From Takakia lepidozioides (taxonomy: Eukaryota; Plantae; Bryophyta), in NCBI GenBank assembly GCA_030704615.1, contig CM060731.1:92194001-92258000 (forward strand): a DNA stretch of 64,000 nucleotides, in the 5' to 3' direction. Below the pieces are notes generated by a model. That model was not told the origin of the DNA and did no database searches. It saw nothing but the letters and a program-made list of their open reading frames with translations. The translations under genes were made by a program, and so were the position numbers. Every line of letters begins with the position of its first letter. Position 1 is the first letter of the stretch. Of the stretch, positions 1,631-4,042 are shown one piece after another.

Positions 1631-1727
1631 CACTCGAGAGAGATGCGCCATCTAGTTTTCTAGTGCTAAGCTAGATATAATGTTTGTTTTAGCACTATTA
1701 TAATATACCTTGGTGTGACACAGGTCT

Positions 1728-3025
1728 GTGAATGATTCAACTGAGTGTTTAACCATTCTGGAGCGGCAGAAAGCTATTAAGCTTGCGGCGGATACTTCAC
1801 TTGCAGTTACTGCTAGCGGATCTTGCTGGAGTCACGCGTTTAGTAGAGATCTTGCTCAGGCTACTGGAGATGAATGCAGCCTGATTGATTCATCAAGTAA
1901 CGACGGGTTAAAGGTTAGCTCTTTTTCGTGCCTAGATTCTTCTGCAGCGATCCTGTCATCGTCTTAGGGCTGCCGTGTGGAGTGGAGATGAAGGGCTTGC
2001 CGTGGGTGACTCCAAGCCAGCCCGTTTTTTTGGATTGAAGAGGCCTGTGAGCAAGGGTACCGTTTATGGAGAGCCCAAGAATCAGGGTATTACCCAGTTC
2101 AAGTTTCAGCGAAGCCTGCGGTCTGTAGCTGAGGAGCGGCCAGGCAGAGAGACGACTACAACGAGAAGGAAGAGATGGTAATGTCGGTATCGCAGGGCAC
2201 TCGTCAGTAACTGCCCGACGCCAGCTGTTATTCAGCCTTTCTGTGGCACTTGGAGCACTAAGGTTGGGCAATGTTGATCTTCCTGCAAAAGCAGCAGTTT
2301 CAACGAGAGTAAAGCTCAAAGACATTAAAAATCCCAAGCTGCAGGATGCTCTCAGGGTGGCGGTTGCTGGAGACCTGGAAACTGCTGAAGAATTGTTTTC
2401 AGCTTTGATAGATGAGGATTCCGCAAATGCCAGTGTCTGGTCCAACCGGGGGAGTGTGAGGGTCTCCCTTCTGAAGTTTGAGGAGGCGGCCCAGGATTTC
2501 AGTAAGGCTATTGAGCTGGCTCCTGAGGCCCTAGTCCCATTTCTTAATCGCGTCATTTCTTACGAGGCACTTGGACGCTATCAGGAGGCTATTGCCGACT
2601 GCAAAACTGCCATTGTCAATGACCCTGAGGAGTTTGCAGCTTGGTTTAACTTGGGAAAGGTGGAAGCGTGAGTAAGTGACTATGACACTGCTTTGACTGC
2701 TTATTCCAGAGCCTCAGTGCTGGCTCTTGGAATTGCAGGATACCGACTCAAGTAAGCTCTGGTTCTCTTTCAGCTCGACAGATTGGGGGAGGCCAAGAAA
2801 CTGATACAAGGCCTTGTCCGGAAGTATCCAAATTACACTGAGGCTCATGCAGCTCTAGCGGCAGTGCTGTGGAAAGAAGGTGACCGCAGCCGGGCAGAGG
2901 AACAATTCTCTGAGGCCACTGCTCGGGAACCGCAGTACAGCAATATCAGGTGGATTGGTGTAGAGCTGCAGTGGCCACCAGGTGCCGTGGAAGCCATGGC
3001 CAAGTTTCTTAATATCACTTACTAA
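1728..3025 (+). pseudogene. Captured intronless host TPR-protein gene (probably plastid/thylakoid-targeted), disrupted
   Basis: TPR motifs ASVWSNRGSVR..FEEAAQDFSKAIELAP, PFLNR..YEALGRYQEAIADC and AAWFNLG. An RRQLL...AKA Tat-like signal precedes them. In-frame stops at 2669-2671 and ~2753. No introns. Confidence 0.8.
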
Positions 3026-3149
3026 GATAAGATTTTGCCAAGCATCGTCTTCAAATAAGCGAAGCGGAAGTCTACAATTGTTGGGCAGCGTTCTCTCTAT
3101 TCGGCTGGGGCCAGGAAGCACAAGTCTGGCGGACACCAAATCACCACTC

Positions 3150-3430
3150 TATGCACTCTTTCAGAGCCAGCAGGCTCTTGTTGATCTCTGCTCCTTCTAT
3201 CCTGGTTTGGCGAGCAGCATCAGTAGTGTCAGCCCACACTCACTGCCGGCAAGGTCAATAAAAGAAATTTGCCAACGACACGGTTTCCTCTTGAGTCACT
3301 GCCTTCGGCTCTCTTGATAACAAGCTGAAGGATAGCATGAGATCTGGATGACTCTTCATTGGTACCGTTGGAGCCAGTGCTGCGAGCAGAGTTGCCCTTG
3401 TCAATAAACTCCTTCACCACCTCCACAGCT
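3150..3430 (-). pseudogene. Captured kinesin motor-domain fragment (kinesin-13-like), intronless and frameshifted
   Basis: Reads RSTGSNGTNEESSRSHAILQL...[40 protein letters not shown], which contains switch I and switch II. Confidence 0.88.
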
Positions 3431-4042
3431 GAATTTAGGTTCGAAGATTGGCCGTCCGTTCGATCTGCCGTCGCTGTGCTGGCATCTGCTCGGCGAGGAG
3501 AATCTCGCAACAGAGCCCACTCAGAGTTTGCAAGCTTGGGCTAGGTGAGGAAGCGGGAAAGAGATGGCGACAGCAATGGCATGCACGCGGCTTGCTGCGG
3601 CCCCTTCCTTGGCCGTGGTGCAAAGATCCCGTTTTTTTTTTTTTTTTGGCAGCTCAAGCTCTGTGGACATTGGTAAGGGAACCTGTGAGAACTACATGAA
3701 CGGCCTCGGGAACCCGTAGATAACCTGGGAACAGGTTGTAATGGCGAGAACGTTTTGGTGTTAAAAAAAAAAAAAAAAAAAAAAAACCTTTTGATCTAAT
3801 TTAAATGATTTAGAGCCTGATTGGTCATAACTTTGTCAGATGGACTCCGTTTGACTCAGTTTTTGGGGGAATAGCTGCAGAAAGGGGAAATCTACCTATC
3901 TTAACCTAGTTTTAGTTTTTGGGACTCTGCTAAAAATCTATGGAATTTTTAGAGTGTGAGTGTGCCGTGAAAAATCCACAATTCTGTTTCTAGAACCAAT
4001 TCTGGTCTATTTGAGAGACAAATCTATGGATGTCCTCCTTGC

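Follow-up and report, generated by a model that had tools for sequence, protein, structure and literature searches.

The 64,000-nucleotide stretch of the Takakia lepidozioides genome analyzed here (the window; assembly GCA_030704615.1, contig CM060731.1, positions 92,194,001 to 92,258,000) contains a complete copy and a partial copy of a Ty3/gypsy retrotransposon that encodes a DNA methyltransferase (DNMT) in addition to reverse transcriptase, RNase H, and integrase (Table 1). In the complete copy (copy 1), a series of pieces of unrelated host genes lies between the first repeat of the element and the leader that it has in common with copy 2. An original prediction, made from the letters of the window, held that this is a variable cargo slot, refilled by repeated capture of host mRNAs at a fixed site. 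Having compared the window with related elements of Marchantia and Calypogeia, we consider it likely that positions 1645 to 3697, possibly to 3786, form a hypervariable 5' leader that is filled by repeated template switching onto packaged host mRNAs and is inherited as passenger DNA.

The cargo of copy 1 starts exactly where a putative primer site ends. Both genes that had been predicted for it, a TPR gene in sense and a kinesin-13 motor fragment in antisense orientation, were recovered, together with a sense fragment of ribosomal protein eL15 (RPL15e; 42 codons) that had been missed. The TPR piece, the left limit of which falls between approximately 2152 and 2200, stays in one frame through two in-frame stops (2669 to 2671 and 2753 to 2755) up to its native stop at 3023. 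The kinesin-13 call is right because positions 3144 to 3239 match only kinesin-13 chains in the PDB, namely KIF2C, KIF2A, and Klp10A (5e-9). Throughout, proteins interrupted by stops were searched piecewise, and pieces or exons were never joined. On the minus strand, the final piece of the cargo (3632 to 3697) resembles an mRNA 3' end, with 50 nt of sequence and a poly(A) tail behind it, and poly(A) and poly(T) remnants were found at the ends of pieces in the window.

Copy 2 has a different left neighborhood. The predicted abrupt start of similarity at 3698 and 58212 is real: to the right, 3698 to 9488 aligns with 58212 to 64000 at 95.4% identity (self-BLAST, 5802 columns; 242 substitutions and 10 indels) in a match that stops solely at the window edge, and to the left nothing aligns between the two copies. 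The piece abutting the boundary in copy 2 is the 5' end of an RPS7e mRNA in antisense orientation, again as predicted, with a coding match of codons 1 to 38 at 57953 to 58066 and the 5' untranslated region (UTR) assigned onward toward 58211. Farther left lie two features that were absent from the original prediction: a sense SCA7 piece of 31 codons and, beyond DNA without assignment, a pol fragment of another gypsy element, which has no long terminal repeat (LTR) or gag beside it and is possibly part of the copy 2 cargo. Since neither an A repeat nor a primer-site motif occurs anywhere left of copy 2 in the window, and since this pol fragment is only 850 bp away, the DNA left of 58212 might instead be an unrelated junction, produced by 5' truncation, deletion, or rearrangement beside another retrotransposon. 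For copy 2, the only copy that this explanation concerns, we think it unlikely. The 560 bp at the boundary hold the antisense RPS7 start and the sense SCA7 piece, which have the same short, mixed-orientation style as the pieces of copy 1 and are unlike a normal gene, and, as a cargo piece would be, the pol fragment is truncated on either side.

Table 1. Features of the window discussed in the text, in order of position
Feature	Positions	Strand	Evidence and remarks
Left target-site duplication, AATA	1292-1295		Partner AATA at 13427-13430
Copy 1 of the DNMT-carrying Ty3/gypsy element	1296-13426		Complete insertion, TG..CA ends, 4-bp target duplication
Repeat A1	1296-1630	+	Begins TGTCA; 335 bp, 100% identical to A2 at 12993-13327 (self-BLAST)
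Primer-binding-site-like motif	1631-1644	+	Complementary to 1449-1464 within repeat A1
Cargo piece(s) without assignment	1645-2025		No Pfam match for any open reading frame
Internal fragment of ribosomal protein eL15 mRNA, amino acids 68-109 of 204	2026-2151	+	Pfam 1.3e-6; PDB 6.7e-14 with alignment
5'-truncated TPR (thylakoid-lumen type) coding sequence to native stop	2152-3025	+	Pfam TPR_1 4e-15; no introns
Piece without match, possibly TPR 3' UTR (by position)	3026-3143		
Kinesin-13 motor fragment, switch I to past switch II	3144-3540	-	Pfam 1.7e-9; PDB; one frameshift near 3235
Piece without Pfam match	3541-3631		
T16 run (3632-3647) plus 50 nt	3632-3697	-	
65-nt piece common to both copies, then A24 run (3763-3786)	3698-3786	+	Alignment
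Leader common to both copies	3787-5527	+	Includes open reading frame 4043-4792
Gag to DNMT region	5528-9348	+	Four frame segments versus the continuous Marchantia reading frame P0001; Pfam DNA_methylase 6e-9
pol	9670-12645	+	Reverse transcriptase (RVT_1), RNase H (RT_RNaseH), integrase (H2C2 and rve), PHD finger (Pfam)
3' end	12895-13426	+	Polypurine tract aggggggcg 12895-12903, B1 12904-12990, GC, A2 12993-13327, 12-nt spacer, B2 13340-13426
Reverse transcriptase-RNase H-integrase-zinc fragment of another gypsy element	55235-57365	-	Cut at both ends; reading frames with YLDD motif
SCA7 (ataxin-7/Sgf73-type) zinc-binding domain fragment	57692-57784	+	Pfam 2.5e-7; PDB ataxin-7 0.0045
RPS7e 5' UTR and codons 1-38, ATG at 58066	57953-58211	-	Pfam 9.4e-5; PDB 1.6e-10 with alignment; abuts the shared boundary
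Copy 2 of the element	58212-64000	+	Continues past the window end

That the cargo derives from mRNA, as had been proposed, is indicated by its introns, or rather by the lack of them. TPR is the one long coding piece of the window. Its longest stop-free part was searched against a representative library, and the best single-stretch relative was P0087 (assembly GCA_043381455.1), at 69% identity. The gene for P0087 (locus L008) has five exons, with introns after approximately amino acids 238, 260, 306, and 365, and positions 2201 to 3022 of the window match amino acids 117 to 390 in one uninterrupted tblastn match that crosses all four intron positions. If the parent gene in the window species shares these introns, the TPR cargo would have lost all four and would therefore come from a spliced mRNA. 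A further relative, P0108, was rejected as a second genomic TPR ortholog: it is an intron-free 1.3-kb contig of a Logan public-run assembly and probably a transcript assembly.

A related element of Marchantia, at locus L006, carries the reading frame of MND1 in its slot, and the parent gene (P0051) is located at L007. Positions 7557 to 9078 of L006 match L007 in 11 consecutive exon blocks of 96 to 100% identity, beginning 371 nt upstream of the start codon, in the annotated 5' UTR, and ending 399 nt past the last coding exon. Missing from the cargo are 10 gaps of 100 to 711 nt in L007, at least 7 of which have GT..AG ends, and beyond the last matching base an A-rich tract follows in the cargo, whereas the gene goes on into unrelated DNA. 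At the 5' junction, the primer site is followed by six unmatched nucleotides; the 3' junction in Marchantia falls within the A-rich tract, which is able to pair with poly(A). In other words, the L006 slot holds a complete spliced and polyadenylated MND1 mRNA, in sense orientation, with the primer site (plus 6 nt) on one side and the constant leader on the other. Judging from the matches described above, the window cargo comes from unrelated host genes, in both orientations, and is likewise probably made of reverse-transcribed pieces of spliced mRNAs.

The Marchantia elements L001, L003, and L006 illustrate the variability of the slot. From a point at approximately 9104 to 9169 onward to the 3' end, and likewise over repeat A and the 11-nt primer site, they are 96 to 97% identical; the 1.55 to 2.0 kb that separate the primer-site motif from the A-rich tract show no similarity among them. 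The constant leader starts in all three at the same sequence, TTCTGAAGAG..., preceded by an A-rich tract of 50 to 65 nt that differs from one element to the next (A19 in L003). Two more Marchantia copies, L004 and L005, contain one further cargo in common at two different loci, so that a cargo must be heritable on transposition. Among the six slots compared, the only shared piece is the one of 65 nt found in both window copies. Repeated capture at a fixed site is thus borne out by three unrelated fillings of one slot in Marchantia, although, as discussed below, it is not universal. Recurrent replacement at one interval is, on the evidence of these alignments, true of the family, though not of every member.

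The fixed 5' edge of the slot is the putative primer site directly 3' of repeat A. In the window, the motif can pair with its site in A1 over 14 nt with one G-U pair, and a fold of 1449 to 1650 pairs its two ends (z -4.2). All complete elements examined have 11 to 14 nt directly 3' of A1 that are complementary to a site inside A, and in 5 copies from Marchantia and Calypogeia the complementarity is perfect over 11 to 12 nt. Relative to the Marchantia pair, the Calypogeia primer motif and its partner in A have both changed together. Self-priming elements such as Tf1 show this arrangement of a repeat and an adjacent complementary motif, and the complementarity predicts that the element belongs to the Tf1/sushi self-priming type.

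The 3' edge, placed at 3698 by the original prediction, is less certain than the 5' edge. Because both copies break at this point, each with its own left partner, and chance is unlikely to produce this, we lean toward 3698 as the fixed edge, at which the constant leader would start. The Marchantia layout suggests a somewhat less plausible reading, namely that 3698 to 3786 is a last cargo piece that the two copies share and that ends in a poly(A) tail; 3698 could then be a breakpoint in the shared piece 3698 to 3762. The counterpart of the A24 run in copy 2 is A10 (58279 to 58288). The 65-nt piece folds to a hairpin in both copies, and the fold is not significant in copy 2.

Also in agreement with the original prediction, the cargo of copy 1 lies inside the unit bounded by target-site duplications and moved with it, because the TG..CA ends, the AATA/AATA duplication, and the 100% identical pairs A1/A2 and B1/B2 enclose it. 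The gag-DNMT region of copy 1 has acquired at least three frameshifts. Given these frameshifts, and given repeats that are identical and a cargo that is decayed, copy 1 would appear to be a defective copy that was moved in trans with an old cargo. An alternative would be that the pieces entered as DNA after integration, as retrocopies made by long interspersed nuclear elements (LINEs) or as repair filler in a fragile leader. Indeed, the pieces are intron-free and some have poly(A) or poly(T) ends, as LINE-made retrocopies do, and the mixed-orientation patchworks resemble filler DNA at repaired breaks. We nevertheless find such entry quite improbable. In copy 1, identical end repeats around a decayed cargo imply that the cargo predates the last transposition. 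Moreover, the interval filled by different cargos is exactly the same, so that one cargo takes the place of another instead of interrupting it, with no empty leader between them, no duplications flank the MND1 insert, and one cargo is present at both L004 and L005.

Spliced RNA has been copied into DNA, the copy lies inside the integrated unit, and it has been recurrently replaced beside the primer site; template switching is what we infer to have brought this about. Switching onto packaged mRNAs is the accepted route of gene capture by LTR elements (PMC5131818, PMC13317346). If the element primes itself as Tf1 does, the leader beside the primer site would be the last part copied into minus-strand DNA and the first part made after plus-strand transfer. 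At a fixed point, which in Marchantia is the A-rich tract, reverse transcriptase might leave the element RNA; there the T-rich end of the minus strand could pair with the poly(A) tail of an mRNA, which would then be copied to its 5' end. A minus strand primed in this way on poly(A) and extended to the 5' end of the mRNA would give exactly the structure seen in L006. The enzyme may copy a single packaged host RNA, or several in turn. Plus-strand strong-stop DNA would end with a copy of the 11-nt primer, and synthesis would be completed by joining there; the border between constant and variable sequence would fall at the end of the primer site because the plus strand needs to join just at the primer-site copy. 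Sense pieces might thus arise by switching during minus-strand synthesis, and antisense pieces that stop at the 5' end of an mRNA, such as RPS7, or start with a T run, such as 3632 to 3697, by switching of plus-strand DNA onto RNA. Mosaics would require several rounds of switching. Once acquired, a cargo would pass to daughter copies, decay by mutation, and be replaced in later cycles.

Several points weigh against repeated template switching as the source of the cargo. The loss of introns in the window depends on one ortholog, of 69% identity, and concerns the TPR piece only, and the junctions between the window pieces are placed only approximately. Mixed orientation would call for two kinds of switch or for several rounds. 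Copy 2 has no 5' end, so within the window the case for different cargo at the same position depends on one shared boundary. In Marchantia, no stop-to-stop reading frame in the L003 and L004 slots gave a Pfam match, and L001 gave just a sub-threshold match to adaptin; a host origin of these three slot fillings is a candidate reading at most. Finally, three Calypogeia copies (L002, L009, and L010) are without a host-mRNA slot and have a constant leader. Directly 3' of the primer site they have approximately 360 nt in common, and their only difference is a related, very GC-rich insert of approximately 700 nt. This insert occupies 7830 to 8522 in L009 and 8204 to 8954 in L010 and is absent from L002, which reads through at 7553 to 7565.

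Does the slot serve a purpose? The original prediction had speculated that the cargo, combined with the DNMT, acts as a decoy against silencing or as a source of antisense RNA affecting the donor genes. In such a device, a host-derived and often antisense leader RNA would shield the element from small-RNA silencing or, together with the DNMT, would silence or methylate the donor genes. Cargo is indeed present, in a conserved place, in every copy seen in two genera (the window and Marchantia), the coding regions are kept, and the element carries a PHD reader as well as the DNMT. Still, an evolved device of this kind seems to us most improbable. There is no theme common to the donor genes, orientation is mixed and in the case of the Marchantia MND1 cargo fully sense, the pieces carry stops and frameshifts, the contents turn over completely between copies that are 96 to 97% identical, and the Calypogeia relatives do without the slot. 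Short, broken, mixed-orientation, and copy-specific pieces fit passenger DNA that bears no sign of purpose, and the speculation was therefore not upheld.

A different possibility is that the A-rich tract beside the self-priming site is itself an evolved acquisition module, through which polyadenylated mRNA would be captured in many cycles, with the host-derived leader benefiting the element. We hold this to be a long shot. If it were true, the acquired leader could camouflage the transcript from small-RNA surveillance or yield antisense RNA that is directed at host genes and acts with the DNMT and the PHD reader.

The carrier itself has an unusual layout. Its organization as A...B-A-B with TGTCA...CGACA ends and its own 4-bp duplication is common to L001, L002, L003, L004, and L006. 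All six complete elements checked (copy 1 of the window, Marchantia L001, L003, L004, and L006, and Calypogeia L002) are flanked by 4-bp target duplications, which read AATA, GGTT, CCCT, GGGG, CCGG, and AGGT. In copy 1, the two B repeats are 87 bp long and 100% identical, and B2 ends in ACA. The junction between B and A is a palindrome, GACAG|CTGTC. The polypurine tract aggggggcg stands directly 5' of B1 in all complete elements examined. The integrated end repeats look like a permuted form of a B-A LTR, a layout that fits integration from a circular or concatemeric junction. A DIRS/PAT-like element, which the A1...B1-A2-B2 repeats might suggest, was ruled out by the DDE integrase in pol and by the 4-bp target duplications in all copies.

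In its coding regions, the element has a C5 DNA methyltransferase domain (PF00145) inside the open reading frame 6609 to 9077. Relatives of the DNMT reading frame, at 46 to 63% identity, occur in Marchantia polymorpha, Calypogeia fissa, and Sphagnum, and Marchantia L001 keeps a continuous reading frame of 1278 amino acids. No coding part of copy 1 has been replaced by cargo; gag-DNMT and pol all lie downstream. The leader common to the two window copies extends over 1.7 kb to gag (5528) and is conserved across species only from approximately 4954. Within it, the reading frame at 4043 to 4792 (249 amino acids) differs between the copies by 6 synonymous and 13 nonsynonymous changes and by a stop in copy 2. 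Pfam gave no match to it and sequence searches no homolog, an atlas search gave just weak leads, and neither Marchantia nor Calypogeia shows conservation of the region. This frame was rejected as gag, since it has no homolog and the alignment with the Marchantia gag-DNMT protein begins at 5528; it could be an old, fixed cargo or a lineage-specific gene.

Some further observations concern the structure of these elements and their surroundings. Tandem duplications of approximately 1 kb (96.6 to 100% identity) are found at different places in L004 (8213 to 10208), L005 (4778 to 6778), and L006 (15942 to 17948), the duplicated unit of L005 taking in repeat A and the cargo start. Calypogeia L002 ends in B-A-B-A-B (15454 to 16429), one repeat unit more than the usual B-A-B. 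L004 and L005 are 100% identical over 8 kb (9211 to 17258) but 96% identical in cargo and repeat A, and the identity of L005 to L004 stops at the B1/A2 junction; this pattern could be due to recombination, gene conversion, or an assembly effect. Copy 1 of the window is flanked by G-rich DNA of similar style (960 to 1295 and 13427 to 13700), and because the two flanks are alike, it probably sits inside another repeat. Short repeat families of 77 to 92% identity, partly inverted, flank the region between the two copies (179 to 955, 21766 to 22241, 43148 to 45863, and 52531 to 54591).

If the slot is filled as we propose, its fast turnover, with unrelated cargo in copies that are 96 to 97% identical, would provide a natural record of template switching in the replication of a plant retrotransposon. 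The family would steadily supply bryophyte genomes with retrocopies and exon mosaics, and the cargo could be used as a lineage barcode for the history of its transposition. Since the slot is present in the genetic model Marchantia polymorpha, the mechanism is open to experiment.

Among known systems, acutely transforming retroviruses resemble the present element in that host mRNA becomes joined to the retroelement by nonhomologous recombination while reverse transcription proceeds, with some 3' junctions at poly(A). Transduction of oncogenes by these viruses was reportedly treated by Swain and Coffin in 1992 (as cited in PMC5131818). It needs a read-through fusion transcript, and the cargo is in sense orientation, replaces viral genes, and is selected for function. 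The combination of a C5 methyltransferase with reverse transcriptase, RNase H, and a DDE integrase in one Ty3/gypsy element is that of KnitGypsy-Dnmt3 of Klebsormidium nitens, the alga from which gypsy elements with a Dnmt3-type methyltransferase encoded in the polyprotein were first described (de Mendoza et al. 2018, PMC5890265). By this architecture, and by comparison with PMC5890265, our carrier is a DNMT- and PHD-carrying Ty3/gypsy element of the KnitGypsy-Dnmt3 kind, although the bryophyte elements differ by their permuted end repeats and self-priming site. The searched passages of PMC5890265 report no host-mRNA cargo, and the words Marchantia and PHD are absent from the paper.

Pack-MULEs, Pack-CACTA elements, and Helitrons (PMC13317346) also contain mosaics of fragments from several genes in either orientation. 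These elements, however, take up genomic DNA with introns at the DNA level, whereas the pieces described here are spliced and some carry poly(A). Retroposition by template switching of LTR elements is known from yeast Ty1 and from the chimeras of Drosophila and vertebrates (Tan et al. 2016, PMC5131818), in which spliced mRNA pieces of several donors likewise lie inside an LTR element and transpose again. In those chimeras, the retrocopy replaces parts of the reading frames at arbitrary points and leaves the element nonautonomous; in contrast, the cargo described here is confined to one leader interval beside the primer site, no reading frame gives way to it, and it occurs in each of the copies seen from two genera (the window and Marchantia). 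Maize Bs1 (Jin and Bennetzen 1994; Elrouby and Bureau 2001, 2010; as cited in PMC13317346) is likewise a plant LTR element that propagates pieces of unlinked host genes. It is reported to be a small nonautonomous element with three transduced host gene segments, a fixed cargo that turned into a chimeric gene, whereas the cargo here varies between near-identical copies and shows no coding constraint. While mRNA capture by LTR elements is usually rare, scattered, and destructive to the element, here it has a fixed address next to the primer site and the reading frames are spared. The slot would thus record a known accident of reverse transcription in a form that is unusually specific for one site.

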